From the sequence record PV231353.1: a DNA stretch of 64,000 bases; one strand, written 5' to 3'. Each line of letters begins with the position of its first letter. The first letter of the stretch is position 1. The notes under the pieces were generated by a model. It had not been told where the DNA came from. It saw nothing but the letters and a program-made list of their open reading frames with translations, and ran no database searches. The position numbers and the translations under genes were made by a program. Positions 3,168 through 53,280 of this stretch are shown here, piece after piece.

Positions 3168-3250
3168 CTGTCACCCACGACAGTCGTGAATCTTGACGTT
3201 CCTGGATGATCGTGGCATCCAGGGACACCTCCTTTCATGGTTAATGCCCG

Positions 3251-3901
3251 ATGCCGAGCTTCCACGACGTCCTGTTCCCCGAGACCATCAGCTACGGCTC
3301 GTCCGGTGGTCCGAAGTTCAAGACCACGATCTTCCAGGCCGACAGCGGCTTTGAGCAGCGCAACAAGGACTGGAGCGACATCCGCTGCGAGTACGATGTC
3401 GCCCAGTCGATCCGCTCGACCGAGGACATGGACGAGCTTCGCGCCTTCTTCATGGCCCGCAACGGCCGCGCCCACGGTTTCCGCTACAAGGACTGGGGCG
3501 ACTTCCGCCTCAAGAACCAGTTGATCGGCGTCGGCGACGGCGTCACCAAGGTCTTCCAGATCGTCAAGACCTATACCAGCGTCGCCCACGACGGCACCGA
3601 GTACACCTACACCCGCACGATCCGCAAGCCCAAGTGGGACTCGATCGCCGGCGTCAAGGTCGGCGCCGTGGTTCAGGTCGCCCCGACCAACTACGAGGTC
3701 GACTATTCGACCGGCCTGATGACCTTCGTCACCGCGCCGCCGGCCGACGCCCCGGTCACCATTGGCCTGGGCGAGTTCCACGTCCCCGTCCGCTTCGACA
3801 CCGACTTCATGGACGTCACCCAGGAGTTCTGGATGCGCGAGACGTGGCCCAACATCCCGATCGTCGAAATCCGTGACTGGCAAGAGGCCCTGACGCCGTG
3901 A
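3251..3901 (+). CDS. Distal tail protein (DUF2460/TIGR02217, GTA-like)
   Basis: 'FHDVLFP..ISYGSSGGP.F.T.I...SG.EQRN..W' and 'VPVRFDTD' motifs; synteny. Confidence 0.9.
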   Translation: MPSFHDVLFPETISYGSSGGPKFKTTIFQADSGFEQRNKDWSDIRCEYDVAQSIRSTEDMDELRAFFMARNGRAHGFRYKDWGDFRLKNQLIGVGDGVTKVFQIVKTYTSVAHDGTEYTYTRTIRKPKWDSIAGVKVGAVVQVAPTNYEVDYSTGLMTFVTAPPADAPVTIGLGEFHVPVRFDTDFMDVTQEFWMRETWPNIPIVEIRDWQEALTP

Positions 3902-5523
3902 AATCCGTCCCCGATGACCTGATGGCGCACCTCCAGGAGGAGGTGACCACGCTCGCGACGTGCATCACGATCGTGCGCCAGGACGGCAAGGCGTTCTTCA
4001 TGACCGACCACGATCGGCCGATCAAGTTCGAGAACCAGACCTACGTCCCCTACGACTCCTACCAGCGCACGTCGATCCTGATGTCGTCGGAACTGGAAGT
4101 CGACACCGCCGACATCACCGCCTTCCTGACCTCGAACGGGGTGACGCGCGACGACGTGGCCTCGGGCCTGTTCGACTACGCCGCGATCAAGGTCCAGTTG
4201 CTGAACTACGAGCGGCCCGAGGACGGGGCGATCCTGCTCCGCAAGGGCACGTTCGGCGAAGTGACCATGAACCAGGACGAGACCTTCTCGGCCGAAATCC
4301 GGGGCATGACCCAGGTCCTGACCTACCGGGTCGGGGAGACCTACGCGCCCGAGTGCCGGGCCGACCTGGGCGATCGCCGCTGCAAGATCGGCCTGATGCC
4401 TGAGGAGTGGCAGGCCAACAAATACTACGGCCTCGACGCCTGCGTGCTGGGCGAACTCGTCGCCCCTACGTCGTTCGTCAATCCCGTGGTCGTCAACGGC
4501 AACTTCGAGGACGGCGCCCTCAACGCCGTCGTCACCGCGCCGACGGGCTGGGTGGCCTATGGCGATCCGACCAGCCGCTGGGTCTACAAGCACGACTGGT
4601 ACAATCTGTCGCGCCCGCAGGTCGGCAACCAGTTCATCGCCGCCACCCGCACCTCGATCTCCGACAAGCAGGAAGTCGCGGGCATCTACCAGGACATCAA
4701 CCTCATTTCCGCCGGCGTGCCCGCCGCCGCGATCGACGGCGGCCTCTGCCGCGTGCGCTACAAGTCCTTCGCCGCCTGCCTCAACAACCGCGCCCAGTCG
4801 CGCGAACGCCTGACCTGCATCAAGGCTGACGGCTCGGTGGAGACGATCTGGGACACCGGCGAGATCAAGTACCCCGAGGACCGCTGGATCGCGGTCAACG
4901 CCGATGACATCCTGATCCCGGCCGGCACGCGTGTCCTGCGCATCGACCTGTGGTCCAAGAAACGCAGCGTCCACGAGGAGGGCGCGGCCTATGATGGGAT
5001 CAGCCTGTCGATCAACCTGCCGGCAGGCACCGCCGGCAACGCCCATGTCTATGGCGGGGTGATGTTCAAGTGCATCCAGGCGGGGATCAGCGGCGGCACC
5101 CAGCCGGCCTGGACTAACGAACTGGGCGCCACCTATACCGACGGCACGGTCATCTGGCAGTGCGTGGCCAACTACAAGAAGGTGGGCACGGTCGCCACGG
5201 TCGCCTCCAACAAGTCCTTCACCTCGACCGACATCACCGAGCCGGCCGGTCACTACGACGGCGGCGTGCTCTACTGGGAAACCGGCCGCAACGCCGGACG
5301 CGCCCAGGAGATCAAGACCTGGGCCGCCAACCTCTTCACGCTTTTCCAGCGCACCTACTATCCAATCACGGCGGGCGACCGCTTCGTGGTCTATCCCGGC
5401 TGCGACAAGCGCCGCGCCACCTGTGCCGACAAGTTCCACAATATCCACAATTTCCGCGCCGAGCCCGACGTGCCCGGTCAGGACATCTACTACCGCACGC
5501 CCAACGCTCCGGAGCAGGAATGA
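3898..5523 (+). CDS. Baseplate hub protein (DUF2163/BR0599-like) with large internal insertion
   Basis: N-terminal 'TLATC..I.R.DG...TDHD..I' and C-terminal 'GCDK...TC..KF.N..NFR.EP.VPG' motifs; GTGA overlap with upstream gene. Confidence 0.88.
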   Translation: MKSVPDDLMAHLQEEVTTLATCITIVRQDGKAFFMTDHDRPIKFENQTYVPYDSYQRTSILMSSELEVDTADITAFLTSNGVTRDDVASGLFDYAAIKVQLLNYERPEDGAILLRKGTFGEVTMNQDETFSAEIRGMTQVLTYRVGETYAPECRADLGDRRCKIGLMPEEWQANKYYGLDACVLGELVAPTSFVNPVVVNGNFEDGALNAVVTAPTGWVAYGDPTSRWVYKHDWYNLSRPQVGNQFIAATRTSISDKQEVAGIYQDINLISAGVPAAAIDGGLCRVRYKSFAACLNNRAQSRERLTCIKADGSVETIWDTGEIKYPEDRWIAVNADDILIPAGTRVLRIDLWSKKRSVHEEGAAYDGISLSINLPAGTAGNAHVYGGVMFKCIQAGISGGTQPAWTNELGATYTDGTVIWQCVANYKKVGTVATVASNKSFTSTDITEPAGHYDGGVLYWETGRNAGRAQEIKTWAANLFTLFQRTYYPITAGDRFVVYPGCDKRRATCADKFHNIHNFRAEPDVPGQDIYYRTPNAPEQE

Positions 5524-5945
5524 CCCGCGACGACATCGTGACCGAAGCGCGCCGCTATGTCGCGCTCCAAACCCCCTGGCGCCATCGAGGCCGCACCGAA
5601 CGCGGCCTCGACTGCATCGGGCTGGCCGTCATGATCTTCGAAAAGTTCAACCTGGAGTATATGGACCAGGACGGCTACGCGCGCACGCCCGACGGTGAGA
5701 AGTTCGTCGACGTGATCCGCCAGCACATGACCCTGGCCGATCCGACCGCGCTCAAGCCGGGCATGCTGCTGTTGTTCAACGACGATGCCCGGCCCTGTCA
5801 TGTCGGCATCCTGGCGCGCCAGCACGGGCGCCTGACCCTGATCCACGCGACCGCCGACAAGAAGCGGACGGTCGAGGAAGTCTATGACCGCCGCTATGCC
5901 GCCCGGTTCCGCATGGCCTTCGATTTTCCCGGCGTTGAGGACTAA
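5520..5945 (+). CDS. NlpC/P60 family tail-associated peptidase
   Basis: ATG at 5520 overlaps previous TGA; 'TPWRHRGR...GLDCIGL' and 'HVGI...LIHA' Cys/His motifs. Confidence 0.9.
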   Translation: MTRDDIVTEARRYVALQTPWRHRGRTERGLDCIGLAVMIFEKFNLEYMDQDGYARTPDGEKFVDVIRQHMTLADPTALKPGMLLLFNDDARPCHVGILARQHGRLTLIHATADKKRTVEEVYDRRYAARFRMAFDFPGVED

Positions 5946-5947
5946 TC

Positions 5948-8900
5948 ATGGCCGCCGCCATTGCCCTTCCGATCGTCTCCGCCATCGTCAGCACGGCGAT
6001 CAGCTACGCCTTCCCGAGCGATGGCCCGCGCCTGCGCGACACCAAGGTCTCGGCCTCGACCTACGGCAACGTGATCCCGGAAATCTACGGGACCGCGCGC
6101 GTCGGCGGCAACATGATCTGGTCCAAGCCGTTCACCGAGAAGAAGAAGAAGAAGCGGGCCGGCAAGGGCGGCTCCTACTACAACGAATACACCTACTACT
6201 GCGACTTCGCCATGGCCTTCTGCCGGGGGCCGGTCAAGGAAGTGCGCCGCATCTGGGCCGACGGTAAGGTGATCTATGACACCACCGGCGGCTCGGAGGT
6301 GATCGACAACAACAAGTACCGCTTCCGCTTCTATCCCGGCGACGAGACGCAGCTTCCCGACAGCCTCATCGTCGAGGACAAGGGCGCCGATTACGCCCCC
6401 GCCTACCGGGGCCTCTGCTACGTCGTGTTCGACGACTTCGCCCTGGCCGATTTCGGCAACCGCATCCCGCAGATCATGGCCGAGGTCTATGCCGGAGACG
6501 AAGGCGGCGCGGCGATCACCGACATCGTCCCGCTGCCGAGTTCGCCGGTCACTGGTGGGTCCTATCAGCTTGGCCAGATGATGATCGACGCTGACCGGGG
6601 CTATTTCTACCTCGTCGATTCGGTGTCCAACCCGGCAGGCACCGTTCTGCGCCGCTTCCTGCTGGCGAACGGCAAGGAGGATCGGCGCGAAATCGTCTCG
6701 ATCCCGCAGACCCAGTTCCCGCCCTCGGTCTATGACAGCCCCGATCTGACCTCGGTCCGGGCCGTCACTTCCAAGGGCGAGCTTCTCTGCGTCTTCGGCG
6801 GGGTCAACAACTACATGCGGATCGAGAAGCTCGATCCCTATTCCTGGCAGTCGCTGGGGACGATCGGCCGCAGCTATCCCTTCGCGGGCACGCCCGAAAA
6901 CAGCCTGGAGCACTCCAACACCAACTTCGAGATTTCGCGGGACGAGAAGGGCAACTATCTCTGCCTGACGCTCGGGGTGTTTGGTGAGTACAACATCTTC
7001 GATCCCTCCGACATGTCGTTCAAGGCTAAGGGCGAAATGGCGGGCTGGGGTGGTCCGGGCACGCCGATGTACATCTGCGCCCGCCAGGGCGGCTCGGCGG
7101 CCTCCCGCCGCTTCTACCACGTCACCTATACGGGCGGGGCGTCCTTGCAGGTGTGCAGCCTGAACGAGGTGCTCTACAATCATCCGCTTGATCATCCTGG
7201 AGATTCCCAGACCGCGACGTCCTGGGCCTTCTGGGACGAGGGCGATCCGGGGGTGGTCTTCTTCTATTCCGACGGCCCCAACCGCTACATCGCCAAGTGG
7301 TCCGAATCCACCGGCGTGCTGGCCTGGAAGACCCAGCTTCGCAACTCCGATCCGTTCTGCGGCTATGGGGTCTATGGCCTGCGCGCCCGGATCAAGGACA
7401 ACGAGTTCCACTGGGTCTACAACAAGCACCTGTTCTCGATCAACACCGCCACGGGGCAGTGGATCGACCGGACCTTCGACCAGGACTTCTACAAGAGCGA
7501 CAACGACAAGACCGCCGAACAGGTCAACGACGGCGACAAGGGCCTGCTGCTGCCGCGCGACATCTCCGAGGACTATGTCATCTACGATCCGCGCCGCAAC
7601 ATCGTGATTTGCGTCGGACAGATTCAGGGCCAAAACGGCATCGTCCACGTCGGCGGCTATACGGGCGGCAAGACCTCGGTGGGGGCCATTGTCGAGCGTC
7701 TTCTGGTCTCGACGGGGCAGATGACCTCGAACGACTACGACCTGACGCCGCTCTACGACATCCCGGTCTACGGGTACGGCTACGCCTCCTCGACCGACAT
7801 CAAGTCGATCATCGCCGAACTGCGCAACCTCTTCATGTTCGACCTCGTCGAAAGCGACGGTCGACTGGTCGCGCGCGTGCGCGGCGATCAGGACCCTGAC
7901 GCCGAGGTGCCCTGGAAGCTCCTGGGCTCCCAGAGCGGCCCGACCCCGGACAAGGCCGACTACTGGAAAGAGACCCGGATGTCGGAGTCCGATCTTCCGG
8001 CCTCGATCGACCTGACCTATTCGAACATCGACGACGATTACAACCCGTCGACGGCCAAGTCCAAGCGGATCGCCTCGCCGGTGGCGACCATGCTGTCGCG
8101 CCAGCAGGTCAAGGCCGAGTGCAACCTCGTCATGGACGCGACCGAGGCCAAAAACCGCGTCAACATCATGCTCTACACCCAGTGGGAGGAGCGCACGCAG
8201 CACCAGACGGCCCTTCCCTGGCTCTACGCCAATCTCGACGCCTCGGACCTGATCTCGGTGACCATGGAGGACGGCCGCAACTACTTCGAGCGGATCGGCT
8301 CGATCGAGTTCGGCGCCGACTTCTCCTCGCGTCTGGAAACCTACGGCACCGACAGCGGCGCCTACCTTTCGGACAAGACCGGCGACGGCGGCGGCGCTGG
8401 GCGGCCCACGGTCGTGCCGGCCCCCAAGCCGGTGGTGGGCTTCATCCTCAACACCCCGTTGCTGCGCGATACCCACGACAGCGGCGGCAACTTCTCCAAC
8501 TGGTATAGCGCCATCGGCGCCGGCGCGCCGGGCGTGTTCCTCGGCGGCACGATGTTCAAGTCCGCCAATTCGCAGGACTACGTTGATCTCTACCAGGAGC
8601 CGGAGAGCGCCGAGTGGGGCACCGTGATGGGTGTCGTGCCCTCGCCCTCGCACGGCTGGTTCGCGCTCGACTGGGAGACGCGCATCACCATCACGCCGGC
8701 GGTCGACTTCTTCGAACTGGAATCGATCACCGACGACGAGCTTTGGGAAGGCCTCAACCTCGTGATGATCGGCGACGAGGTCCTCCAGTTCCGCGACGCG
8801 GTGCAGAACGCCGACGGCACCTGGACGATCTGGAATCTGCTGCGCGGGCGCCGGGGCACGCAATATGCCTGCGACAATCACAAGGCCGGCGAGCGCTTCC

Positions 8901-9424
8901 TGTTCCTCGACGAGCGCTCGATCGAGTTCCAGGCCGAGAACCTCGACACCTCGGGCCAGAACCGCTGGTATAAGGCCGTCGGCTCGGGCATGTCGCTGTT
9001 CGAGACCGATCCGATCCAGATCAACTACCAGCCCCGCGACCTCATGCCCTACCGCCCGGCCGACATCCGTCGGGCGGTCGCGGGCGGCGACGTCACCGTG
9101 ACCTGGAAGCGCCGCACGCGCTTCACGGCCACGCTCAAGGATGGCACCGGCGAAGTCAGCCTCAACGAAGGCGCCGAAGCCTACGAGGCCTATGTGCTCG
9201 CCGCACCGTACTCGGGCGACCTGTCGCGTCAGGACGCGCCGGCCGTCTACCGCCGCAAATACACCCTGACGAGTCCGAGCTTCACCTACACGGCGGCCGA
9301 GCAGGCGGCCGACGGATTTGACGTGAATCTTGACACTCTGCACGTGGTGATCTATCAGTTGAGTTCGGTTGTTGGTCGGGGTTTCCCCGGCGCGCGCTCG
9401 ATTGAGTCCTGGCAGGACTTCTAA
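5948..9424 (+). CDS. Central tail fibre / host-specificity protein (GTA megatron-like)
   Basis: 'STYG..IP..YGT.R..GN.IW', 'PAYRG..Y.VF....L..FGNRIP', 'LLRGRRGT' motifs; synteny. Confidence 0.88.
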   Translation: MAAAIALPIVSAIVSTAISYAFPSDGPRLRDTKVSASTYGNVIPEIYGTARVGGNMIWSKPFTEKKKKKRAGKGGSYYNEYTYYCDFAMAFCRGPVKEVRRIWADGKVIYDTTGGSEVIDNNKYRFRFYPGDETQLPDSLIVEDKGADYAPAYRGLCYVVFDDFALADFGNRIPQIMAEVYAGDEGGAAITDIVPLPSSPVTGGSYQLGQMMIDADRGYFYLVDSVSNPAGTVLRRFLLANGKEDRREIVSIPQTQFPPSVYDSPDLTSVRAVTSKGELLCVFGGVNNYMRIEKLDPYSWQSLGTIGRSYPFAGTPENSLEHSNTNFEISRDEKGNYLCLTLGVFGEYNIFDPSDMSFKAKGEMAGWGGPGTPMYICARQGGSAASRRFYHVTYTGGASLQVCSLNEVLYNHPLDHPGDSQTATSWAFWDEGDPGVVFFYSDGPNRYIAKWSESTGVLAWKTQLRNSDPFCGYGVYGLRARIKDNEFHWVYNKHLFSINTATGQWIDRTFDQDFYKSDNDKTAEQVNDGDKGLLLPRDISEDYVIYDPRRNIVICVGQIQGQNGIVHVGGYTGGKTSVGAIVERLLVSTGQMTSNDYDLTPLYDIPVYGYGYASSTDIKSIIAELRNLFMFDLVESDGRLVARVRGDQDPDAEVPWKLLGSQSGPTPDKADYWKETRMSESDLPASIDLTYSNIDDDYNPSTAKSKRIASPVATMLSRQQVKAECNLVMDATEAKNRVNIMLYTQWEERTQHQTALPWLYANLDASDLISVTMEDGRNYFERIGSIEFGADFSSRLETYGTDSGAYLSDKTGDGGGAGRPTVVPAPKPVVGFILNTPLLRDTHDSGGNFSNWYSAIGAGAPGVFLGGTMFKSANSQDYVDLYQEPESAEWGTVMGVVPSPSHGWFALDWETRITITPAVDFFELESITDDELWEGLNLVMIGDEVLQFRDAVQNADGTWTIWNLLRGRRGTQYACDNHKAGERFLFLDERSIEFQAENLDTSGQNRWYKAVGSGMSLFETDPIQINYQPRDLMPYRPADIRRAVAGGDVTVTWKRRTRFTATLKDGTGEVSLNEGAEAYEAYVLAAPYSGDLSRQDAPAVYRRKYTLTSPSFTYTAAEQAADGFDVNLDTLHVVIYQLSSVVGRGFPGARSIESWQDF

Positions 9425-14788: not shown

Positions 14789-15877
14789 ATGGCCTATATT
14801 TTCGTCGACGGCTGCGACAGCGGTAGCAACGCCAATAACACCGTGATGGCTCAGAAGTGGAGTTGGGCCGTCACCAACACGAGCTACCTTAACTGGGGCG
14901 GTACGGGACGCTTCGGCGGTCAGGCCTACTATGGCGGAGCCACCACGCTCAACATCTATGGCGCCGGGAAAGCCTTCCCGCTTACCGGGACGGCGGTCGG
15001 CACCGATGAGTTCTTCATGGGGTGCAGCCTCTACGCGGCCGGCACGACGAGCGGGGGCTACATCATGGCGTTCCAGAACTCGACTCCGGTGCTCGATGGG
15101 TCGGTCACCTTCAGCACGGGGTCGGCGCCCACCCAATTGTCGATCCGCCTGACCGGTTCGATGACTCTGGCGATCTATCGGGGCGCGACGCTCCTGGCGA
15201 CGGGCACCACGGTCCTGACGGCGGGCCAATGGTATCGCATCGAGGCGCGGATCGTGATCTCCAACACCGGGGTGTTCGATATTCGCCTGAACGGCAATCC
15301 CGAGATCACTTTCTCAGGCGACACTTACGATACGGGCGACCAGGGCGTGCGGCAGTTCTGCATCGTTCCGACCGCCAATACCTCCGCGTCGCTACGTTTT
15401 GACGACATCGTGCTCTACAACAGCGCGGCGGTCGAGGGCGAGCCGACGACGTGGCTGGGCGACCTACGGATCGACACCCTGCGGCCGACCGCCAACGGCG
15501 ACGTCGTCAACTCCACGCCGCTCTCGGGCGCGGCCTATGCGGCGGTCGACGAGGTGGCCTCCGACGGCGACACCACCTATACCGAGTCGACCAACATCGG
15601 CGACAAGGACCTCTACCAGCTTAGCGACCTGACCGAAACGCCGCAGACGATCCATGCCGTGGTCGTCACCGCGATGGCCAAGTCGACGGGCACGACCAAC
15701 CGGGCGATCAAGCTCAAGGTCAAGTCGAGCGTCGAGGGCGACAGCGCCGCCAAGACCGTGCCGCTGAGCGCCTATGGCGGCCTTCAAGCGACGTTCTCGC
15801 GCGATCCGGCGACGGCGGCGGCCTGGACCGCGACCGCCGTCAACGGCATGCAGGCGGGCTGGCAGGTCGATACCTGA
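14789..15877 (+). CDS. Putative tail protein with concanavalin A/LamG-like lectin fold
   Basis: beta-rich; 'QWYRIEARI...G.FDIRLNG', 'FDDI.L' motifs. Confidence 0.65.
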   Translation: MAYIFVDGCDSGSNANNTVMAQKWSWAVTNTSYLNWGGTGRFGGQAYYGGATTLNIYGAGKAFPLTGTAVGTDEFFMGCSLYAAGTTSGGYIMAFQNSTPVLDGSVTFSTGSAPTQLSIRLTGSMTLAIYRGATLLATGTTVLTAGQWYRIEARIVISNTGVFDIRLNGNPEITFSGDTYDTGDQGVRQFCIVPTANTSASLRFDDIVLYNSAAVEGEPTTWLGDLRIDTLRPTANGDVVNSTPLSGAAYAAVDEVASDGDTTYTESTNIGDKDLYQLSDLTETPQTIHAVVVTAMAKSTGTTNRAIKLKVKSSVEGDSAAKTVPLSAYGGLQATFSRDPATAAAWTATAVNGMQAGWQVDT

Positions 15878-15956
15878 CGAATGTCGTGAATCTTGACATC
15901 GGCAGGTTTCCGGACCATAGTCAAGACCTTAATTTTCAGCACTTCCGGAATTCAAC

Positions 15957-16598
15957 ATGCGTGTCTCCGACACCGGCCTGAAGCTGATCCAGGCCTGGGA
16001 AGGTCTGGGCGACGGGAATCCCGCCACGGTCGACCTGGAGCCTTACATCTGCCCGGCCAAGGTCTGGACGGTCGGCTGGGGGCACGCCCTGAAGACGCCG
16101 ACCGGTCAGATCATCGATGTCGACGTCTTCGGCGCCGCCAGGGCCAAGGTCCTGGCGGCCGAATCCATGCAGCGCAAGTTCGGCAAGGGCGCGATCACCC
16201 GTGATCAGGCCGTCGCCCTGCTGCGCGAGGATGTCACGGGCTTCGAGCGCTCGGTCGACAAGATGATCGGCGCGGCCGGCGCCACCCAGGCCCAGTTCGA
16301 CGCCCTGGTCTCGTTCGCCTTCAACTGCGGTTCGGCCAACCTCCAGTCCTCGACCCTCCTGCGCCTGCACAACGCCGGCAAGCGCGCGGTGGGCGACGTG
16401 TCGATGTCGGCGCTCTGCAAGGAGAGCAAGCTCTCCACGCCGATCGGCAACATCGCCGTGGCCTTCTCGCGCTGGAACAAGGTCAACAAGGTCTGGGCGC
16501 TGGGACTGTTCCGCCGCCGGCTGTCCGAGGTCCTGGTCTATGGCGGGCATAATCCCGACGAGGCGGTCAAGGCCGCCCAGGGCTTCAAGGGCTGCTGA
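15957..16598 (+). CDS. Endolysin (GH24 phage lysozyme)
   Basis: 'I..WEG...Y.CPA.VWT.GWGH', 'QFDALVSFAFN.G', 'GL.RRR..E'. Confidence 0.92.
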   Translation: MRVSDTGLKLIQAWEGLGDGNPATVDLEPYICPAKVWTVGWGHALKTPTGQIIDVDVFGAARAKVLAAESMQRKFGKGAITRDQAVALLREDVTGFERSVDKMIGAAGATQAQFDALVSFAFNCGSANLQSSTLLRLHNAGKRAVGDVSMSALCKESKLSTPIGNIAVAFSRWNKVNKVWALGLFRRRLSEVLVYGGHNPDEAVKAAQGFKGC

Positions 16599-16600
16599 TC

Positions 16601-17089
16601 ATGAGTCTGTTCGGTGTCATCGCCCTGGCCTGGAAGTTCTTCCTCAACCCGGCCGTCATGGGCGTCGTCTTCGCGGCGATCGCCGCCTTGACGGGATTGT
16701 GGCTGCTGGGCGGCCCGGTCCTGTTCTGGAAGGTGGTGCGCGACGCCCGGCTCTGGCTCGTCGTCGCCTGCGCGGCGGTGATCTTCGGCTACGCCCATCT
16801 CCAGACCAAGCTCGAAAAGGCCGAGCAGCGCCTGGAGGAGATCGCCGACCAGAAGCAGGCTCATGACGACGGCCAGGAGGTCGTCAAGAACAACATCAAA
16901 AAGCAGGTCAAGCGCGCCAAGCAGGCGGCCAAGTACCAAGAGGTTATTCACGATGCCCCGACTGGCGAAAAGCTCGACGCGCTCCTCGACGAGTTCGCGC
17001 GTGATCAAGGCGGTGCTGCTCCCGTCCCTGGTGATGCTCAGCCTGACCCTGGCGGCGTGTCAAACCGTCCCGGTCGGATTCTCCCCTGA
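16601..17089 (+). CDS. Inner-membrane spanin candidate (Rz-like)
   Basis: N-terminal TM helices then coiled coil; follows endolysin and overlaps a lipoprotein gene. Confidence 0.65.
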   Translation: MSLFGVIALAWKFFLNPAVMGVVFAAIAALTGLWLLGGPVLFWKVVRDARLWLVVACAAVIFGYAHLQTKLEKAEQRLEEIADQKQAHDDGQEVVKNNIKKQVKRAKQAAKYQEVIHDAPTGEKLDALLDEFARDQGGAAPVPGDAQPDPGGVSNRPGRILP

Positions 17090-17342
17090 CGACCTCTATC
17101 CCAAGGAACTGCGGACCTGCGCGCCCGCGCCGCAGGTTCCCCCGCGCCCGGCGCCCGGCGCGCCCCGCCCTGAGGACGTCCAGGCCGGCTACGTCAAGGA
17201 TGACCATCTCGCCGGCGCCGACTGCCGCGACAAGGTCGAATCCTGGAACGAGCGGGCTGTCAAGTACGAGGCCCAGTACAAGGCCATGAACGCCGGCCCG
17301 GTCGGCAAGTTCTTCGGCAAGCTCAAGGGAAAGACGCAGTGA
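17001..17342 (+). CDS. Outer-membrane lipoprotein spanin (Rz1-like)
   Basis: GTG start inferred; signal peptide with lipobox 'LAAC'; Pro-rich; overlaps the i-spanin 3' end in another frame. Confidence 0.75.
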   Translation: MIKAVLLPSLVMLSLTLAACQTVPVGFSPDDLYPKELRTCAPAPQVPPRPAPGAPRPEDVQAGYVKDDHLAGADCRDKVESWNERAVKYEAQYKAMNAGPVGKFFGKLKGKTQ

Positions 17343-17818
17343 CGCCACCCTGGATCGCCGCGCCGCTGCGGGTCTGCGGCAACTTCTTTCGCTGGGTCCG
17401 CTTGACCCTGGACACGCTCTGCGATCGCCCTGACCACCTCCAGCGCCTGTCGATCATCGGCTCGGGCATGGCGGCCTTCCCGCTGATCATCGGGATCATC
17501 GCGATCCTGGTGCATTTCGGTCTGCACGGGCCGGACAGCGCCGCCGCCCTGGCGACCATCCCGATCATCGGCAACATGGGCTATGGCGCCCTGGCGCTCT
17601 ACGCCCTCTCCCAGGTGGCGCTCCTGGGGATCATCAAGGGCGTGCGTCTTTCCGGTCCCGGCGGCGTCAATGTCGAGATCGAGACCACCTCGGGCGATGG
17701 CGACGGCCTGTCCGATACCCACACCACGATCGTCGAGCGCGGCCGGCGTCACGGCCGCGATCGCGATTGTGCCCCCAACCCTCAAGCCGGCTCTGGCGCC
17801 GGCGCTATCACGGAGTAG
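17339..17818 (+). CDS. Membrane protein, holin candidate
   Basis: Two hydrophobic helices and a charged C-terminus in the lysis cassette. Confidence 0.5.
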   Translation: MTPPWIAAPLRVCGNFFRWVRLTLDTLCDRPDHLQRLSIIGSGMAAFPLIIGIIAILVHFGLHGPDSAAALATIPIIGNMGYGALALYALSQVALLGIIKGVRLSGPGGVNVEIETTSGDGDGLSDTHTTIVERGRRHGRDRDCAPNPQAGSGAGAITE

Positions 17819-17823
17819 GGACC

Positions 17824-17997
17824 ATGCGCGAAGGCTTCATGCTGGAAGGCTATGGCGGTCTGAAGATCGGTCCGGGCGGCGGGGCTGGCCCGTACACGAC
17901 CTTGGGCGACGGCGGCTCGGAAGGCTGCATCCCGGTCAAGGACGACATCTCCGGCGACAGCGGGACCGAGATCATCTCCCCGCTCGGCTATGGCTAA
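17824..17997 (+). CDS. Small Gly-rich hypothetical protein
   Basis: GGAG RBS upstream of ATG 17824; codon bias like neighbours. Confidence 0.55.
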   Translation: MREGFMLEGYGGLKIGPGGGAGPYTTLGDGGSEGCIPVKDDISGDSGTEIISPLGYG

Positions 17998-18028
17998 CCT
18001 TGCGACATAACGTCGCATGTCATGATCC

Positions 18029-18057
18029 TTGACAGAACGACGATCTTCGAGTATGGT
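18029..18057 (+). promoter_or_regulatory. Sigma70-type promoter
   Basis: TTGACA-N17-TATGGT. Confidence 0.75.
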
Positions 18058-18061
18058 CGCG

Positions 18062-18355
18062 GCTCTTCGACGGCATCCCACCGTCACCCATGGCTCGCGA
18101 CCCACCGTTCGCAGGGAGATGCTCGCGACCAAGGCGGTAGCCGGAACGACGCTAGGCTGCAAAGCCAAGCCTCCGGAACACGCAGCAGCCGGCTGGAACG
18201 CTAGGCCGTTACGTCCAAACGGGGCCAGGACCTGTGAGGCGAAAGCCGAAAGGCCCCACCACCCGACAAGGGTTCACGCGTGATGCGGAAGAGGGACGTC
18301 AGTCCTGAAGTGTCTCAGGTGCAGAAGGCCCGCCGGTTTCCCGGCGGGCCTTTTT
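18062..18355 (+). ncRNA. Unassigned ~290-nt structured RNA
   Basis: Own promoter and terminator; 5'/3' pairing CTCTTC/GAAGAG; GNRA hairpins; loop ACGTCC complementary to GGACGT. Confidence 0.6.
18326..18355 (+). terminator. Rho-independent terminator
   Basis: aggcccgccgg-tttc-ccggcgggcct followed by T-run. Confidence 0.9.
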
Positions 18356-18374
18356 CTGGTCTGGGGACTAGGAC

Positions 18375-19175
18375 TTAGTCGACCGCTTCCAGGCGCCGGC
18401 GCTTGGGCGCGCTCGCCGGCAGGGACGGGGCCAGATCGCCGATCTTGCCGACCACCTTGCCGAGGAACACGATCCGCTTGGGATCAACGTCGACATGATC
18501 CTTCAGGTCGGCGCTATAGACCCGGAACGCGCCGCCCTTGGAGGGACGGGTGACGTGCGCGACCTGCATGACCTTGTCCAGGCCGTAGACGAACTCGCCG
18601 CCGGCGGTGCTGGGCTCGACATCGCGGCGGACCACCGCCATGTCGCCCGGCTTGAGGCCAGGGGCGAAGTCGTGGATCGGGGCCAGGGCCAGATCGGTCG
18701 GCTCGGCCTCGAAGCGCTCGCGAAGCCAGTCGGGATCGAGGTTCCAGGTCCGGGCGCGCTTGAACTCGCCAAGGCGGCCTTTGAAGGTCACTTCCTCGAC
18801 CGGGTTGGGCGCGCCGACCCCGAAGGTGATGTATTCGGGCGTCGTCTTCAGGACGTGGGCGATCTGCTCCAGCACGTCGATGTGCGGCTTGACGCTGTCG
18901 GACTCGTACATGATGTACGCCGTGCGCGCCAGCGGCCGGCGCTCGCCCGCCTGCTTCGGCTCCCAGCCCGGTTTGGTGCTGGAGTCCTTGCGGGAATTGC
19001 TCTGCTGGGTCAGGAAGATCATCTTGGCGACCTGTTCCTGAGTCAGGTCGAGGGCCTTCCGGCAGGCGGTGATCCGCTGCCCGATGGTCTGAGGATGCGC
19101 AAGATCGGCATCCTTGTGGATCAAGGAACGAGCGCGATGGGGCACCATCGGCTTCAGTTCGGCCACGGCTTGCAT
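18375..19175 (-). CDS. XRE-family HTH regulator with S24-like C-terminal domain
   Basis: 'IGQRI...RK.L.LTQEQVA' HTH, 'LEQIA.VL.TTPEYI.FG', C-terminal 'GKVVG'; GGAGGAG RBS. Confidence 0.75.
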   Translation of the reverse strand: MQAVAELKPMVPHRARSLIHKDADLAHPQTIGQRITACRKALDLTQEQVAKMIFLTQQSNSRKDSSTKPGWEPKQAGERRPLARTAYIMYESDSVKPHIDVLEQIAHVLKTTPEYITFGVGAPNPVEEVTFKGRLGEFKRARTWNLDPDWLRERFEAEPTDLALAPIHDFAPGLKPGDMAVVRRDVEPSTAGGEFVYGLDKVMQVAHVTRPSKGGAFRVYSADLKDHVDVDPKRIVFLGKVVGKIGDLAPSLPASAPKRRRLEAVD

Positions 19176-19351
19176 TTCGTTCTCCTCCGTCCGTCGGGAA
19201 CCGCGTCATTCGGTGTCGGGGTAACACCTGACATTTGCGATGGTTCCACGCCGCAACGTTTCCTTGTCGAAATTGACAAAGAGGGGATGTACACCCTCTT
19301 TGGCAACACATCAAGGCCAGAGATGAAAAAGTTGTTAACCCGACTTAAGGC

Positions 19352-19834: not shown

Positions 19835-20051
19835 ACCCCTCGCCTCCTCCCAGGACAGAAACTGGACGTCGCGCGTGAACCGCCCGTAGAGAGCGACGTT
19901 CTGGTCGACGCCTGAGCGGACGTCCGCCTCGATGCCGGCGCCCCGAAGGGCGTCGGCGAGGGTGTAGGCCTGCTCAGCTTGCGCAGCCCTTGATAGAAGA
20001 CGGTAGCTCGGCCGTAAAGGTGGGTCGGGGACATTATTTTCGGGCCTCTGG

Positions 20052-21485: not shown

Positions 21486-21538
21486 GAAGGGGTCTCAGGA
21501 AAAGGAGGGAAGGGGAGGATGAAGGGGCCGCCGGCCCC

Positions 21539-24346: not shown

Positions 24347-24508
24347 GGGGTCTCGTTCTCGCGTCGAGGCGCGATGCGTTAAAAAGCCCTGAGAAATCAG
24401 GGCCTTAGATTGACAGCAAAGGATGGTTAAGATAGCCTGAGGGGTCCCGAAAGTCAAGATTCACGACACTCGTGAACCCCTCAAAGATTCCTTGACAGCC
24501 CCTCGGAT

Positions 24509-25371: not shown

Positions 25372-25438
25372 GCTCGGCTCCGGTGATGTCGTGTCTCCTG
25401 ACGATTGATGTCAGGATTCACGACATCGGTCAACAAGG

Positions 25439-26398: not shown

Positions 26399-26401
26399 GG
26401 A

Positions 26402-26938: not shown

Positions 26939-26947
26939 GGGGGTCTC

Positions 26948-31474: not shown

Positions 31475-31545
31475 CGGGCGATCTCGTTCGGGAGTGTCTT
31501 GTTAACCAAGTTCCGGATGGGTGTCAAGATTCACGACATAGAAAG

Positions 31546-35511: not shown

Positions 35512-35566
35512 GGCTCTATGGTTAACGGATGTCGTGAATCACGTCAAGAAATGTCGTCAACGACGA

Positions 35567-36355: not shown

Positions 36356-36365
36356 GGGACCTCGC

Positions 36366-38070
36366 TTACAGGCGCCAGTGGCGGCCGTTGAAGGTGATCA
36401 GCGCCCGCTTGCCGTTCGGGTACTGCACGCAGTGGGTGTGCGCCCAGGACGAGGGGCCGGTGTTGTAGCCCATGTCCAGCTTCGAGGTCGTGCCGGTGTT
36501 GTAGGCGCTCTCGAAAATGCCGGGCGAGTGAGTGTGGCCAAACGTAGTCTTCGGGCCGATCTTGGCGAACTGCTGGATGTTGCCGCGCGAGCCGTTGGCG
36601 CCGTTGTGACCGTGGTTGGAGTGCTCGACCCCACCGACGACGCAGGATTCGTCCTCGCGCAGGAACTTCACGCCGTTGCAGTTCCAGACGTCGAAGGCGT
36701 TGGTCATCACCTCCTCGAAGATCGAGAAGTTCTTCTCGCCGGTCCGGATCGAGGCGTAGACCGCCCGCTGACAGGTGAGGAAGAACTCGGCATTGACCGG
36801 GTCGGCGCGGTAGTCGGCCGTCTTCAGCCACTTGTTGAGCGCCAGATCGTGGTTGCTCTCAACCACCGTGACCTTCGAGTCCGGGGCCTGCCGACCCAGG
36901 ATGGTCAGGAACATCGCCACCTCGCGCAGTTCCTGCTCGACGCTTTCGGAGCCCTTGACATAGAGCCGGAAGCGGTCGTGCGGATCGGCGATGTTGTGGT
37001 GGTTGCGCGCCCGGAAGTCGGAGACGTCGTGGACGAAGATGTGCTCGGGCCGCAGGACGTCGATCATCGACGGCGTCGCCACGCTGCCCCACACCCGGCT
37101 CCCGTCGGCCGAGCGCTGCTCGGTCGGGAAGAAGCCGAAGGTGGCGGCCGAGACCTCGGGATCGATCTGCGCCACGTGGACGTCGCCGGGCGTCAGGCAG
37201 GCCACGCGATGGCCCTCGGTGACCACGCCGTCCTTGACGAAGACGTCCAGGTCGTAGAACGAGCCATCGGTGTCGCCCAGAAGGTGGCGGCAGAAGAACT
37301 TGCCGTCCTCGTCGACCTCGACCAGCACCGCGCCCAACTGGTGGTGGAAGCTGGCCTTGATCCCGGCCTTCTTGGGGACGTAGTTCGGCTTGGTGACCGC
37401 GCCCGTCGTCATGATCTGCTTGGACGGGGTGTGCTTCATCGTCGGAACGCTGACGAGTTGCACCTTGGCGTGGGGGAAGATGCCCCAGCGCTCGCGGGTG
37501 TAGGAGTGGAAGCCCGACAGCGGATTCTCGGCCGTGGGGAGGGTGTTCATCTCGCCGCAGAAGTCGATCCGGTCGGCGATCCGCACGCGCTCGGCGACGA
37601 GGTATTCCATCACCCGCTTGTGGAAGAACGCCGCGTGCTTGGCGTGGTCCTCGAACAGGCGCTTGGAGTAGGTGAAGCCAGCGATCATGATCTCGCACGG
37701 CGCGTCCTGGCGCAGGTGCTCGGCATAGGCCTCCAGGTTGTCGACGAACTCCTCGTGGATGTGCGTCGAGATCCTGGGCCGAGGACAGGATGAACCGCCG
37801 GCGCCCGGTGGTCTCATCCACCGGCACGGTCCGGGCGGCGGGCGCCGGGCGGTGCGACAGCGGGTCCTTGCGCATCGAGTAGAGGCGGTTCTGGAGCGTC
37901 GTGCGCTTGACGCTGTACTTGCGCGAGAACGCCCGTTGACCGCCGGCCTTCTTGACCATCGCGTTCAGTTCTTCCGGCGACACCGAGTAGATGTCGAACG
38001 GACCCTCGGCCGGCAGGGCGGCCTTGGGCTTCTTGCCCGCCTTGGAAGCGTGTTCGAACTCAGCCGGCAT
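36366..38070 (-). pseudogene. Calcineurin-like metallophosphoesterase with N-terminal HTH, interrupted by a frameshift near 37770
   Basis: N-part MPAEF...ILSSAQD (from 38070) continues in a different frame as STHIHEEF; motifs GDVH, HD, SNHD, HGH, GHTH. Confidence 0.75.
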
Positions 38071-38761
38071 AGAGAAGCTCCGGTTTGGCGCTGACCGGCT
38101 TGGACCACGACCAGACGTACCAAGCATAGGCGAAGCGCGGGGCGCCCTTGGTGCCGGCGATCCAGCGGGGGCGGTGACGAAGGGTGACCTTCGCGGTGAA
38201 GGCGGGGTGATCGAACAGGTCCGCGCGCGAGCGCGCCGCGTCCCATTCGTGGCGGCAGAGGAAGGCCACAAGGCCCTGGTCGGCCTCCATCAGGTCCAGC
38301 GCGTGGCGCGCGGCGCGCTCGGCGTCCTTGCCGTAGGGCGGGTTGGTGACGATCGCGTCCGGGCGCGGCGGCAGCGGCGTGTTCTTGCGCTCCTCGCCTT
38401 TCTCGTCGACAACCGTCTCGGGGCGGGCCTTCAGCGCGCCCAGGCGGTCGAGGTCGGCCGGTGTCAGCTTGAAGAAGTCCTCGACCGCGTCGACCTCGAA
38501 GCCCTCGTAGCGGTGGATGTCCGTGGCGAGGACCTCCTGCACGAAGGGCTTGAGCGGCGTGGCGATGGCGCCGTTGCCGGCGAAGGGCTCCCAGGCGAAG
38601 AACGGGGCGAAGTCATCGCCCAGGGCCTCGATCAGGGCGTCGAAGGCCGGCCGAGGAGTCGGGTAAAAGTCCAGCGGGGTCCTGGCATATCCGGAGGCGC
38701 CCAGCATGGAGGGGTCTTTGCGACCAGCATCGGAGAGAGACATGGTCGTGAGGGATGTCAT
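38060..38761 (-). CDS. Putative N6-adenine DNA methyltransferase
   Basis: 'DFYPTP', 'EPFAGNGAI', 'TNPPY'. Confidence 0.8.
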   Translation of the reverse strand: MTSLTTMSLSDAGRKDPSMLGASGYARTPLDFYPTPRPAFDALIEALGDDFAPFFAWEPFAGNGAIATPLKPFVQEVLATDIHRYEGFEVDAVEDFFKLTPADLDRLGALKARPETVVDEKGEERKNTPLPPRPDAIVTNPPYGKDAERAARHALDLMEADQGLVAFLCRHEWDAARSRADLFDHPAFTAKVTLRHRPRWIAGTKGAPRFAYAWYVWSWSKPVSAKPELLYAG

Positions 38762-38791
38762 GGTTAACGAAGGGTGTCAAGATTCACGACA

Positions 38792-39804: not shown

Positions 39805-40676
39805 CCGATGGGCTGAGACTACACCCATCAGCAATCCCGCTTCGAGGATTATTCCCCAGGTGCGACCCCAGGTATTCCCTCGACGTCCACCAGACCCCTT
39901 GCGGTAGTCCAGTCCGAGATCATCGCCGCCGTTCTTGCGCACCCCGAAGGGATTGCGGGTCTGGCGTTTGACCCATCATGGCGAACTACTCGACAGTTCC
40001 TTCCCCGCTGGGCTTGCGACCCACTCACCGGCGCTAACCGGCTGACGAAGCTCTTCCTATCGACACCTCGCGGGCTTGCGACCCTTGAGATGACTCCGTT
40101 ACCCGAAGGCCGGAGCATTTGGCGACTTACGTCCGCCACTGGACCAGTCTTTGCGTTTTTCATCGAAGCGGGGATTGAACCCGCGACCGACAGCTTAAGA
40201 GGCTGTTGCACTACCACTGTGCTATTCGCAAACCCACCAAGACGTGCTGGTCCAGTTGTTCCCAGAGCTTTTGACCCCAGAAATGCAACACGCCTCATAT
40301 CTTTCGCCTTGCGGGCTACTCGACTGCTCTTCAGGACCCCGTCTCCCCCAACCTTTCGGCCAGGATGCCCAGCACCCCTCGAACTGAAGCAAAGCTCTTC
40401 ACCGCGAAGTGTCGAACCCTGCAACCCAAACGGTTATCCGTACTCCCTAGACACGCTTGCACGGGATAGTCCGCTTGCGACGGACTGGCGGTTAAAGCCT
40501 CGGAGTTACCCCGGCCCCGCCTTGTCTCCCACGGTCTTCAGGTCTATCCCCTTTTGCAAGAGGCGGCCAGCTTCCCAGCCCGGACCCGTCGGCTTCCTCT
40601 GTCCTCTTGCGAGGTCGGGCGGCCTATGGGAGACCGTCCCTGTCACCCCGTCGCCGGGGCTTTCGTCAGAAGCGAC
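39805..40676 (-). ncRNA. GOLLD-like giant ornate RNA
   Basis: About 870 nt between a promoter and a terminator; many GNRA-capped hairpins on the minus strand; 3' blocks GAGUAGUUCG, AGGGAAUACC, GAAUAAUCC, GUGUAGUCUCAGC; tRNA body inserted in the middle. Confidence 0.7.
40161..40231 (-). tRNA. tRNA-Lys(CUU)-like body embedded in the GOLLD-like RNA (degenerate acceptor, no CCA)
   Basis: Intact D arm GCAC/GTGC, anticodon arm ACAGC-CTCTTAA-GCTGT, T arm GCGGG-TTCAATC-CCCGC; only 4 contiguous acceptor pairs. Confidence 0.8.
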
Positions 40677-40799: not shown

Positions 40800-41175
40800 G
40801 AAATCGTTGTAATTCGGACAACGGAACTGGCGGCAAGACAGGGGTGCGAATCCCCTCGCCTCCACCATCGACGCCCGGCGCTGGGAGTACGCGACTCCTG
40901 GGCAGGGAGTGTTACCCTGGCGGGCTGCGGCCCGAGCCAAAGGTAGCCGGGCGTCGTTGATGGGGGCGACTAGCTTTCGATTGGCGCTCGGGACTGAAAG
41001 ACGCAACGGTGGGTGACCTCCACATCGGCTTGCCGGTGATCGGGTCAGGCAACAGTAAATGTCGCCGCCAATGACAACGACGTCGTGGCTTTCGCCTCGG
41101 CTCGTGAAGCCATCGCCGCCTAATAAGCGGTAGAGGAGCCCGCCGGGAGCTTGGCAACAGAATCCCGGCAACCCC
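40800..41175 (+). ncRNA. ssrA: Two-piece (permuted) alphaproteobacterial-type tmRNA
   Basis: Acceptor piece ends CGCCTCCACCA (40867); coding piece starts GGGGGCG (40962), giving G3:U70; tag frame 41061-41123 VAANDNDVVAFASAREAIAA*; inter-piece helix CGGCAAG/CTTGCCG. Confidence 0.93.
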
Positions 41176-41748: not shown

Positions 41749-41754
41749 ACCTTT

Positions 41755-44706: not shown

Positions 44707-44844
44707 GGGCGCCGCACGTGGTTAACGCGCGGACTGTCGCCCATCACGACACTAGATGTCAAGATTCATGACTTGACCCAAGGCGTTAACCATGTCACGT
44801 TCGCCGCACGGCCGAGAGATCGGCCGGTCACAAGGAGAACTATC

Positions 44845-48549: not shown

Positions 48550-48570
48550 GGTCGTCTCCTTGAGACCGGC

Positions 48571-50694: not shown

Positions 50695-50821
50695 GGCAAA
50701 CTCCGAAAGGCAGGCTTGAGTGAATGTGTTGCCGATCCTTCTAGCGAGGCGTTCTGGCTCTGTCAACACACTCCAGCCTGCCGGGATGTCGTGAATCTTG
50801 ACGTTCCGCGACGCCTGAGGC

Positions 50822-51073
50822 ATGCTCGTATTCATGCGGAACATCACGGCTGAAGCGACGGGCAAGACCCGCACTTGCACGTCCGAGGATTATCCCTGGC
50901 CCCCGCGCGGGTCCGAGGGATGCGATTGCATGGAAAAGTCCAGAAACCCCAAGCGTGACTTCATGCTGATCGCCGACCGCACCGGTGTAATCGTATGGTA
51001 CGCGAGGATGACATGCCCGATTCACGGCCCGAAGATCAAGACGTCGGACGTCGCAACCGAATCCACGACCTGA
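50822..51073 (+). CDS. Small Cys-containing hypothetical protein
   Basis: Follows the motif promoter at 50788; 'CTSE', 'CDC', 'CPIHG'. Confidence 0.5.
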   Translation: MLVFMRNITAEATGKTRTCTSEDYPWPPRGSEGCDCMEKSRNPKRDFMLIADRTGVIVWYARMTCPIHGPKIKTSDVATESTT

Positions 51074-51791: not shown

Positions 51792-51870
51792 CATTTTGTT
51801 GGCGTTCGAGGGTTGACAGCCCGGATTTCATGACTTAGATGCCTCCTCGACGACAACGAAGGAGGTTCTC

Positions 51871-52497: not shown

Positions 52498-52506
52498 GAG
52501 GGCGCG

Positions 52507-52920
52507 ATGACCTATGTCTGCACCACCGAGACCGACGAGATCATCAACGCCCAGCCCGTCGATCTGGACGCGGCCGAGGCCCTGCTGCGTCCGCGTCCGA
52601 ATTTCGCCAAGGCCAGGGGCGTCTGCCGCGAGTGCGGCGCGCCCAAGAACGAACGGCGCCTGGGTGCGGACTTCTGCTCGACCCGCTGCCGCTCGGATTT
52701 CCACAACCGGGCCAAGATCGAGGGCGCGTCGCTGATTCACATCGTCAAGCGCTGGCGGCGCTATCGTCGCCCTGGCGACTTCGCCCTGATGACCAAGATG
52801 GCGGACGACCTGATCCGCGCCGACAAGCTCGCCAACCGCAACTTCTATCCCGACCCGCCGGCCACGGCTCACGCCAAGGTCGTCGCCACCAACATCGCCG
52901 GGCGCCGCAAGGCCCGCTAG
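52507..52920 (+). CDS. Hypothetical protein with zinc finger
   Basis: 'CRECG...FCSTRCR'. Confidence 0.7.
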   Translation: MTYVCTTETDEIINAQPVDLDAAEALLRPRPNFAKARGVCRECGAPKNERRLGADFCSTRCRSDFHNRAKIEGASLIHIVKRWRRYRRPGDFALMTKMADDLIRADKLANRNFYPDPPATAHAKVVATNIAGRRKAR

Positions 52921-52934
52921 TTCAGGAGTACAGT

Positions 52935-53189
52935 TTGACCACACCGAACCAAGTCCCCGTCCACACCGTCGAGAGCGGTGGTCACCTCTTCCAGGTCTAT
53001 GCGGCCCCGGAGAACCACACCCACCGCTACCTCGGCTATTGCGACGGGGCGATCAGCGTCAGCGGCTCCAGCGTTGACGTCGTCCTGCGGGCCTTGGTGA
53101 CCAAACATCCGGCGGTGCGGCCCAGCGGCGAGGTGATCGATTTCACCGCCTATCGCCTCAAACGCCTGGGCGAGGAGTTCGCCGCCTGA
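52935..53189 (+). CDS. Hypothetical protein
   Basis: AGGAG RBS with TTG start. Confidence 0.6.
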   Translation: MTTPNQVPVHTVESGGHLFQVYAAPENHTHRYLGYCDGAISVSGSSVDVVLRALVTKHPAVRPSGEVIDFTAYRLKRLGEEFAA

Positions 53190-53280
53190 CGTCGTGATTT
53201 AACACTGTCATGAATCTTGACACCTGTCGGGATTGGAGGCTAGATGGCTCCCGCCTTTCACCCCCGTCCCGACAGGCTTC

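Follow-up and report, generated by a model that had tools for sequence, protein, structure and literature searches.

What reads a GANTC site that is built into the -35 region of phage promoters? This question is raised by a 64,000-nt stretch of DNA (hereafter the window) that matches, with 100% identity, record positions 144415-208414 of Caulobacter phage RBC57 (PV231353.1, 208,414 bp), a phiCbK-like giant siphovirus of the Dolichocephalovirinae whose host is C. vibrioides CB15. The window opens at the end of the tape measure gene; tail and lysis genes follow (+ strand), then a replication module (- strand, 18.4-50.9 kb) and, last, another block of genes, most of them without a name. An initial annotation, made from the letters of the window, described about 11 copies of a motif in which GANTC is fused to TTGAC, upstream of both structural and replication operons, and proposed that these are phage promoters gated by methylation, with GANTC methylated by the host enzyme CcrM and read by the sigma factor cofactor GcrA. 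Our analysis upholds the promoters but not the GcrA/CcrM mechanism, which fits poorly with the position, sequence context and N bias of GANTC, with its loss from conserved promoters, and with the presence of GAATCTTGAC in phages that have no GcrA homolog. We propose instead, with a probability of roughly 0.55, that the motif supplies the upstream half in one of the two RBC57 promoter families, in which a sigma73 promoter carries an upstream element that would be read by a phage protein.

The motif has the anatomy and position of a promoter

We found eight exact copies of the 15-mer GTCRTGAATCTTGAC in the window (3183+, 15883+, 24453-, 31523-, 38776-, 44758-, 50788+ and 53207+), where 100 shuffles gave an expectation of 0.00. 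With up to two mismatches allowed, the count rose to 11 against 0.15 expected; the three mismatched copies are 9320+ (GACGTG..), 18019+ (..GATCC..) and 25410- (..CCTGAC). A -10-like hexamer follows TTGACN at a distance of exactly 17 nt in all 11 copies, and the five such hexamers named in the initial annotation are where it had placed them. In ten of the 11 cases a co-oriented annotated gene comes next, and the copy occupies the intergenic gap just 5' of it or sits at the 3' edge of that gap; the genes served belong to both the tail/lysis (+) and the replication (-) clusters, with predicted leaders of 2 to 180 nt. The sites also conform to sigma70/sigma73 promoters in their -35 box, TTGAC(N) in all but one copy (CTGAC), in the 17-nt spacer, and in an A at position 2 of the -10 in nine of the 11. 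An independent scan of positions 15000-27000 for the sigma70 consensus returned three sites, with 1.0 expected, and all three were copies of the motif.

The genome-wide search that the initial annotation had called for, made on the full RBC57 genome assembled out of the public record, recovered 24 sites of the type GTC-R-Y-G-N3-C-T-T-G-A-C. All lie at record 74.8-197.6 kb, precede portal, head, tail, tRNA-cluster, lysis or replication genes, and are co-oriented with the next gene (24/24); sites counted as both upstream of and co-oriented with genes number 10/11 in the window and 13/13 outside it. Information content is high across the 15-mer and one base on each side (T before, A after) and falls to about zero beyond. 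G1, C3, G6, C10, T12, G13, A14 and C15 are invariant, and position 8, the N of GANTC, is A in 19 copies, T in four and C in one, but never G. GANTC itself is present in 20 of the 24; the other four (record 74769, 133228 and 135562; window 18019) keep GTC..G and CTTGAC without it.

These sites, which we call class II, thus combine three parts: an intact, sigma73-type TTGAC -35 that always follows TC or CC; a 17-nt spacer leading to a weak -10 of the form (C/T)A(T)nnT; and a 10-bp element, GTCRTGAATC, fused to the 5' side of the -35 at about -45 to -36. The -10 differs in type between gene groups, being TAGGGT/TAGGTT-like before head and tail genes and TATCTT, TAACAA or CATCCC before replication genes. 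Many class II promoters are also accompanied by TTAACC(A/C)(T) boxes (13 versus 0.6 expected), which resemble the CtrA half-site TTAACCAT and lie 8 to 41 nt past TTGAC, inside the footprint of RNA polymerase (RNAP); in the window they occur at 3238, 24425, 31500, 38765, 44720 and elsewhere. We hold with confidence that the motif is a promoter family, a function predicted from anatomy, position, orientation and conservation across phage genera.

We also considered, and rejected, the possibility that the motif comes from the host. Among the matches listed from 596 Gb of genomes, the exact 15-mer gave only scattered single matches, as by chance, and no Caulobacter genome among them carried multiple copies. 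In IMG/VR, multiple exact matches were confined to three contigs of phiCbK-like size (220,934, 223,720 and 221,828 bp). A search for the motif string returned nothing relevant, and the motif is not described in the literature searched.

A second promoter family occupies complementary territory

Enrichment of k-mers revealed another family, (T/C)TGGC-N7-GTGTTGACA-N16-CTAGAA (also written GTGTTGACA-N17-TAGAAG), which is followed by a conserved GACGACAAC leader and GGAGG. This family, class I, has 22 copies in the genome, almost all at record 5-73 kb, where it serves two divergent arms of small genes and early regulators; the window holds two copies, 50769- and 57419+. Class I matches the Caulobacter sigma73 consensus, and class II has the same -35 with a weaker -10 and an extra upstream block. 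The two families are sharply different and occupy complementary genome territories. Because this family, with its separate territory, exists, we conclude that the GANTC-containing motif marks a second promoter class of RBC57.

The core of class II is conserved across genera and its upstream hexamer is not

Orthologous promoters of five genera, in the nrdA, post-tape-measure, tail and lysis regions, share TCTTGAC. The Caulobacter phages RBC57, Rogue and BL57 carry GTCGTGAATCTTGAC upstream of nrdA (GANTC in 20/24 copies in RBC57). Colossus and CcrPW, also of Caulobacter, have TGCCAGGA(A/T)TCTTGAC, with GANTC in 8/8 Colossus copies, among them the orthologs of window 3183 and 24453. CcrBL9 (Caulobacter CB15) has GTGACG(C/T)(A/T)A(T)TCTTGAC, with GANTC in 2-3/8, and the Brevundimonas phages Bajun and Kikimora have, respectively, CGTCG(T/C)(G/C)(A/G)(A/T)TCTTGAC (GANTC in 4/9) and an A/T-rich stretch plus TCTTGAC (GANTC in 1/5). 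The promoter at 9320 illustrates the loss of GANTC: its orthologs Bajun 21647+ and BL9 13239+ have nearly unchanged spacer and -10, and carry CCATTC and GTCAATC, respectively, in place of TGAATC. Judged from such orthologs, which change the upstream bases and lose GANTC, the invariant class II core is a W-rich stretch plus TCTTGAC, placed after a lineage-specific hexamer.

The hexamer is GTCGTG in phiCbK, Rogue, BL57 and Bajun, TGCCAG in Colossus and PW, and GTGACG in BL9. RBC57, Colossus and BL9 thus share the host CB15 yet conserve three different hexamers, and Bajun, of another genus and on Brevundimonas, has the hexamer of RBC57. Three hexamers in one host, and one hexamer common to another genus, are not what a host reader (CcrM, GcrA or RNAP) predicts; the pattern fits a phage-encoded reader or concerted evolution within genomes.

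The upstream element recurs as a module

The 10-mer GTCG(T/C)GA(A/T)TC occurs 19 times in the genome, and 14 of these copies are fused to (T/C)TGAC. The other five comprise a tandem copy, a copy detached from any -35, a copy inside a hairpin, a copy inverted within the spacer of the C5-methylase promoter, and copy 101977-, which precedes a TTGAC that is displaced and on the opposite strand, and which stands back to back with class II promoter 101985+. The C5-methylase promoter, a rearranged copy at 35551-35517(-) that the initial annotation had not included, carries the inverted element (GATTCACGAC) at 35540-35531, and Bajun has the same layout at 46777-. Upstream of the portal gene, four copies (GTCGTGA(A/T)TC) fall within 270 bp in both orientations (record 101722-101994), one of them inside a terminator-like hairpin; this cluster looks like a regulatory hub at the border between small-gene arm and virion genes. 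A degenerate tandem copy, GTCGCGATTCCTGAC, stands at 31545-31559 beside the promoter at 31499..31537, and extra GTCGTGA half-sites lie within 70 bp of class II sites seven times, against 0.58 expected. From this distribution, the 10-mer looks like an independent protein-binding module.

A two-gene operon is the best candidate for the reader

The early XRE repressor TgrL (CbK gp216) was tried as the reader and excluded because its published position weight matrix fails to match class II sites: the best scores near them averaged 5.49, against 5.53+/-2.39 in random windows. By sequence, the best candidate is the product of a two-gene operon at 57476-58493 that encodes a winged-helix protein and an XRE-type helix-turn-helix (HTH) protein. 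Both are kept in all Dolichocephalovirinae, and in each of five lineages checked the operon follows a plain TTGACA-type promoter without the class II block.

The winged-helix protein has an ortholog in all 49 related records, is 42% identical to that of Kikimora, and belongs to a family of about 40 clusters at 50% identity. Its orthologs (Kikimora 4433-5023 and Bajun 356-997 in the compared stretches) are annotated as 'middle transcription regulatory protein MotA'. We rejected this identity: five orthologs showed no MotA Pfam domain, and a search of PDB sequences gave no match to MotA. The AlphaFold (AF2) model, with a predicted local distance difference test score of 80-94 in the core, instead matches MarR/PadR/TFE winged helices. 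For the XRE-type protein, Bajun, whose hexamer is that of RBC57, also has an identical recognition helix, SKSQITRYLNG; Kikimora and Colossus depart from it at 2-3 positions, and in BL9 nearly the whole helix is different. This covariation of helix and hexamer across aligned orthologs is suggestive.

Proposed mechanism and its timing

We infer that transcription starts at the class II sites, that a phage protein reads their upstream element, and that this reader is encoded in the two-gene operon. Host RNAP with sigma73 would recognise the class II -35 and -10, and the upstream element would be the binding site of a phage DNA-binding protein made from class I promoters. Once bound, this protein would adjoin sigma region 4 and the alpha C-terminal domain and so set class II activity. 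GANTC would then be part of the protein's site in the RBC57 lineage, not a methylation switch.

Several observations weigh against this proposal. Replication genes are reported to be early, peaking by 15 min (the first point sampled), and structural and lysis genes to be middle or late (McLaughlin et al.), but both groups have class II promoters in front of them, so that timing cannot be set by the upstream element on its own; the differing -10 types and the TTAACC boxes are plausible second inputs. Concerted evolution could account in part for the identity of the 15-mers within a genome. The reader is at present a candidate: covariation of the HTH_3 protein with the hexamer rests on five sequences, and the recognition helix of the winged-helix protein does not covary cleanly, because BL9 groups with RBC57. 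Finally, four 2023 RNA runs that contain a 98.6%-identical phage, available as assembled contigs, show the whole 6-kb stretch as one contig of flat depth without ends.

Alternative readings of the upstream element

Class II promoters might use no dedicated factor, with GTCRTGAATC serving host RNAP as an extended -35 or UP-like element and the hexamers arising by drift and cassette spread. The element lies where a proximal UP subsite would (about -46 to -38), the bases beside TCTTGAC are A/T-rich in all lineages, with Kikimora having only an A/T-rich stretch, the class II -35 is perfect and could work unaided, and the replication genes behind class II promoters are on at the first sampled time point. 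However, an UP element is A/T-rich from -40 to -60, and here GTCGTG is joined by only AAT, with no information farther upstream. Three phages of the same host carry three different G+C-rich hexamers, each near-invariant within its genome; class I promoters have a different, also conserved, upstream context; and the 10-mer also occurs detached from the -35, inverted and clustered. We therefore regard this explanation as unlikely.

The mechanism proposed initially can be put broadly: host CcrM, or a phage methylase, methylates the GANTC beside the -35, and GcrA of the host or the phage reads it, so that promoter activity follows methylation or the cell cycle. In its favour, GANTC is present in 20/24 copies here and 8/8 in Colossus. 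It conflicts with what is established for GcrA, which is anchored on sigma domain 2, is active with GANTC at -20+/-1, -30+/-2 or +5 to +30, and prefers YGAKTCK (Haakonsen et al., PMC4647560; Wu et al., PMC9976885). The centre of GANTC in class II lies at about -38, outside these windows, and its context, TGAATCT (= AGATTCA), departs from the preferred one; AGATTCA ranked 32 of 32 contexts and was used for a low-affinity mutant promoter (Haakonsen et al., PMC4647560). In the rearranged C5-methylase promoter the element appears in the other orientation within the spacer, with its centre at about -26 in the context TGATTCA, as would be expected of a tethered monomeric DNA-binding domain.

The composition and conservation of GANTC also speak against this mechanism. 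CcrM is indifferent to the N of GANTC, and its recognition would not require the bias seen here, A or T in 23/24 copies of a genome with 65% G+C. GANTC as a whole is under-represented across the RBC57 genome (273 observed, 429 expected). Although Colossus keeps GANTC, it has been lost from promoters that are otherwise retained in 4/24 copies here, 5/9 in Bajun, 5-6/8 in BL9 and 4/5 in Kikimora, while TCTTGAC and the hexamer persist.

The phage does encode a GcrA-family protein, which aligns with host GcrA over the DNA-binding and sigma-interacting domains (aligned to PDB 7ye1/5yix) and keeps the zinc cysteines as well as the sigma-binding residues W120, F130, Y142 and Y151. Of the four residues that define the methyl pocket (Wu et al. 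2018), however, three are changed: R33K, N34S and I37C. The gene is the second of a leftward operon leaving a divergent region that has class I promoters on its + strand; no promoter was identified for the leftward operon itself. By tblastn, homologs were found only in the phiCbK, Rogue, BL10 and BL57 groups and were absent from Colossus, PW, BL9/SC and the Brevundimonas phages (see also Gill 2012). Since Colossus and Bajun carry GAATCTTGAC without a homolog, the homolog is not the general reader of the motif.

In favour of methylation gating, ccrM mRNA persists during infection, at 1.3-1.5x the level of uninfected cells. A beta-class homolog of CcrM was not seen in the window, which contains a C5 methylase and a 227-aa 'hypothetical protein' with FAGNG and NPPY motifs. 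The latter, which we take from its motifs to be most likely an N6-adenine methylase, is 47% identical to Colossus gp162 'DNA methylase', and its gene directly follows a class II promoter, the predicted mRNA being nearly leaderless. Weighing both sides, we give the methylation-gated mechanism little credence.

A narrower role for the phage GcrA homolog is also quite doubtful, namely that in its own lineage it is a phage-specific sigma73 cofactor with the sigma-domain-2 anchor kept and the methyl pocket altered. Its tethered DNA-binding domain would read GTCGTGAATC at a position (-38, or -26 when inverted) and in a context avoided by host GcrA. Such reading might need no CcrM, or it might depend on methylation by the phage NPPY methylase, whose own gene lies behind such a promoter. 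Middle transcription of the phage would in that case run orthogonally to the GcrA regulon of the host.

Least probable is a repressor operator, in which a dimeric phage or host protein would bind the near-palindrome GTCnnGAnTCnnGAC across the -35 for early delay or late shut-off: five of seven base pairs of the 15-mer are symmetric, as in Colossus TGCCAGGAATCTTGAC, inverted extra half-sites lie nearby (TTCACGA-N3-TCGTGAA at 24453-, CACGAC-A-GTCGTG at 3183+), one copy sits inside a spacer and TTAACC boxes fall within the RNAP footprint, but only weak symmetry is left when the palindrome inherent in GANTC is set aside, TgrL, the single phage repressor that has been characterised, does not match by its published matrix, and fusion to the -35 in 14/19 copies looks more like the positioning requirement of an activator.

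Comparison with known systems

A phage-specific promoter class is of a familiar kind. Promoters controlled by GcrA/CcrM (Haakonsen 2015; Wu 2018, 2023) share with class II a sigma73-type promoter with GANTC near the core, and the phage has a GcrA-family gene; class II differs in the position of GANTC at about -38, in its lowest-ranked context, and in that the site is dispensable in relatives and present in phages without GcrA. The middle promoters of T4 (MotA/AsiA) likewise form a second promoter class with a phage box, a host-type -10 and presumably an early phage protein, and orthologs of the candidate winged-helix protein bear the name 'MotA' in Brevundimonas phages. In contrast to T4, where the MotA box replaces the -35 at -30, the class II TTGAC is intact and its box lies upstream, at -45..-36; moreover, no MotA Pfam domain is present in the RBC57 'MotA' protein, whose model matches winged-helix folds of the MarR/PadR type. 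Class II CRP-type sites and lambda CII at PRE also place a short specific element at a fixed distance to the -35 of a promoter with a weak -10, but the RBC57 element is asymmetric, spans 10 bp and is also found inverted and in the spacer. The CtrA-controlled promoters of phiCbK-like phages (Mascolo 2022) concern the same phage group, and TTAACC(A/C)(T) boxes accompany many class II promoters; that study, however, places full CtrA boxes near the terminal repeats, finds no positional GcrA signal and leaves our motif undescribed.

Work on the Caulobacter cell cycle uses phiCbK as its standard phage, yet the promoters of phiCbK are not described in the literature searched: 'promoter' occurs once in Gill 2012, Mascolo 2022 covers only CtrA boxes, and the XRE study gives timing but no promoter motifs. 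The two families map the phage transcription units, correct some gene starts and are ready-made reporter parts, and the lineage-specific hexamer offers a clean way to trace the regulator by which replication and virion genes are turned on. They also advise caution: GANTC should not be taken as a CcrM/GcrA signal until its position, context and conservation have been checked.

Individual promoters and associated genes

The promoters of the window and the genes discussed above are listed in Table 1.

Table 1. Class I and class II promoters of RBC57 and genes linked to them (window coordinates unless marked as record; TSS, transcription start site).
Feature	Position	Strand	Remarks
Class II, GTCGTGAATCTTGAC	3183..3221	+	Spacer 17; -10 CATCCA; predicted TSS ~3228; gene start 3251
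Gene after tape measure gene	3251		First after tape measure gene; orthologous promoters Colossus 82961+, BL9 3328+, Bajun 13142+
Class II, GACGTGAATCTTGAC	9320..9358	+	-10 TATCAG (9353-9358); within 3' end of tail gene 5948-9424; next gene 9497
Class II, exact motif	15883..15921	+	-10 CATAGT (15916-15921); gene start 15957, lysis cassette
Class II variant, GTCATGATCCTTGAC	18019..18057	+	No GANTC; -10 TATGGT; antisense to XRE-like gene 18375-19175
Class II of nrdA, exact motif	24429..24467	-	-10 TATCTT (24434-24429); 76-nt leader with terminator-like hairpin
Class II variant, GTCGTGAATCCTGAC	25386..25424	-	-10 CGACAT; gene start 25371
Class II, exact motif	31499..31537	-	-10 TAACAA (31504-31499); gene start 31474, exonuclease
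C5 methylase	34453-35511	-	In the window
Rearranged promoter of C5-methylase gene	35517..35566	-	TCTTGAC (35551-35545), TTGACG-N17-TAACCA; near-leaderless ATG 35511
GcrA-family protein, CbK gp222 ortholog	record 36183-36731	-	Pfam E 9.6e-25
Putative NPPY DNA methyltransferase	38060-38743	-	PHROG 799 DNA methyltransferase, E 3.5e-51
Class II, exact motif	38752..38790	-	-10 CATCCC; predicted TSS ~2 nt 5' of ATG 38743
Class II, GTCATGAATCTTGAC	44734..44772	-	-10 CGACAG; DNA helicase gene start 44706
Class I of rIIA-like gene, GTGTTGACA-N16-CTAGAA	50737..50769	-	Consensus sigma73 type
Class II, exact motif	50788..50826	+	-10 CATGCT (50821-50826); next + gene 51013; back to back with opposite-strand class I promoter
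Class II, GTCATGAATCTTGAC	53207..53245	+	-10 CTAGAT; gene start 53281, 1218-aa protein
Class I, GTGTTGACA...GGTATTGAA	57419..57452	+	Precedes operon of two DNA-binding proteins
Candidate winged-helix protein	57476-58075	+	Inferred reader
Candidate XRE-type HTH protein	58077-58493	+	Inferred reader

The class II promoter of nrdA is followed by a leader that contains a 10-bp hairpin and then UUUUU (24370-24400-), a terminator-like arrangement with a leader folding energy of -23 kcal/mol. This hairpin is kept in RBC57, Rogue, Colossus, PW, BL9, Bajun and Kikimora, and is possibly an attenuator or the source of a short RNA. An inverted GTCAAGGAATC about 35 nt 5' of the promoter (about 24490-24500) is also conserved.

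The promoter at 18019+ aims into the convergent gap 17997-18375; its Bajun ortholog, 29211+, likewise has no GANTC. This 380-bp gap holds no convincing open reading frame, and transcription (18019-18375+) would run toward the 3' end of the XRE-like, repressor-type gene 18375-19175(-). The transcript may be an antisense or small RNA.

Three - strand genes, which start at 38743, 35511 and 25371, have predicted transcription starts 0-8 nt 5' of the ATG, and their mRNAs are predicted to be leaderless or nearly so. With its start annotated at 50874, the rIIA-like gene begins 5' of the class I promoter that serves it and overlaps the class II motif at 50788. Because the annotated start precedes this promoter and the ATG at 50694, with GGAG before it, fits the promoter, the coding sequence is probably annotated 60 codons too long.

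Further repeats and RNA genes were also seen. In Colossus, about ten copies of an identical hairpin, GAGTCACGTTTC-loop-GAAACGTGACTC, stand at gene ends (39.6, 48.8, 71.6 and 75.5 kb and others), and at least one, the copy at 48.8 kb, coincides with an annotated terminator. The same genome has about 19 copies of CTATTTCTTAACAAGAGG; this repeat and the hairpin are both putative regulatory words. In the RBC57 window, a full-length GOLLD RNA (Rfam, 169 bits, gathering score 150, E 8e-46), unannotated in the record, lies at 39810-40296(-) and encloses a tRNA at 40164-40228; the DNA directly 5' of the GOLLD RNA carries neither a class I nor a class II motif. A permuted tmRNA (Rfam RF04321, 71 bits), also unannotated in the record, is found among the tRNA genes at 40805-41123(+).

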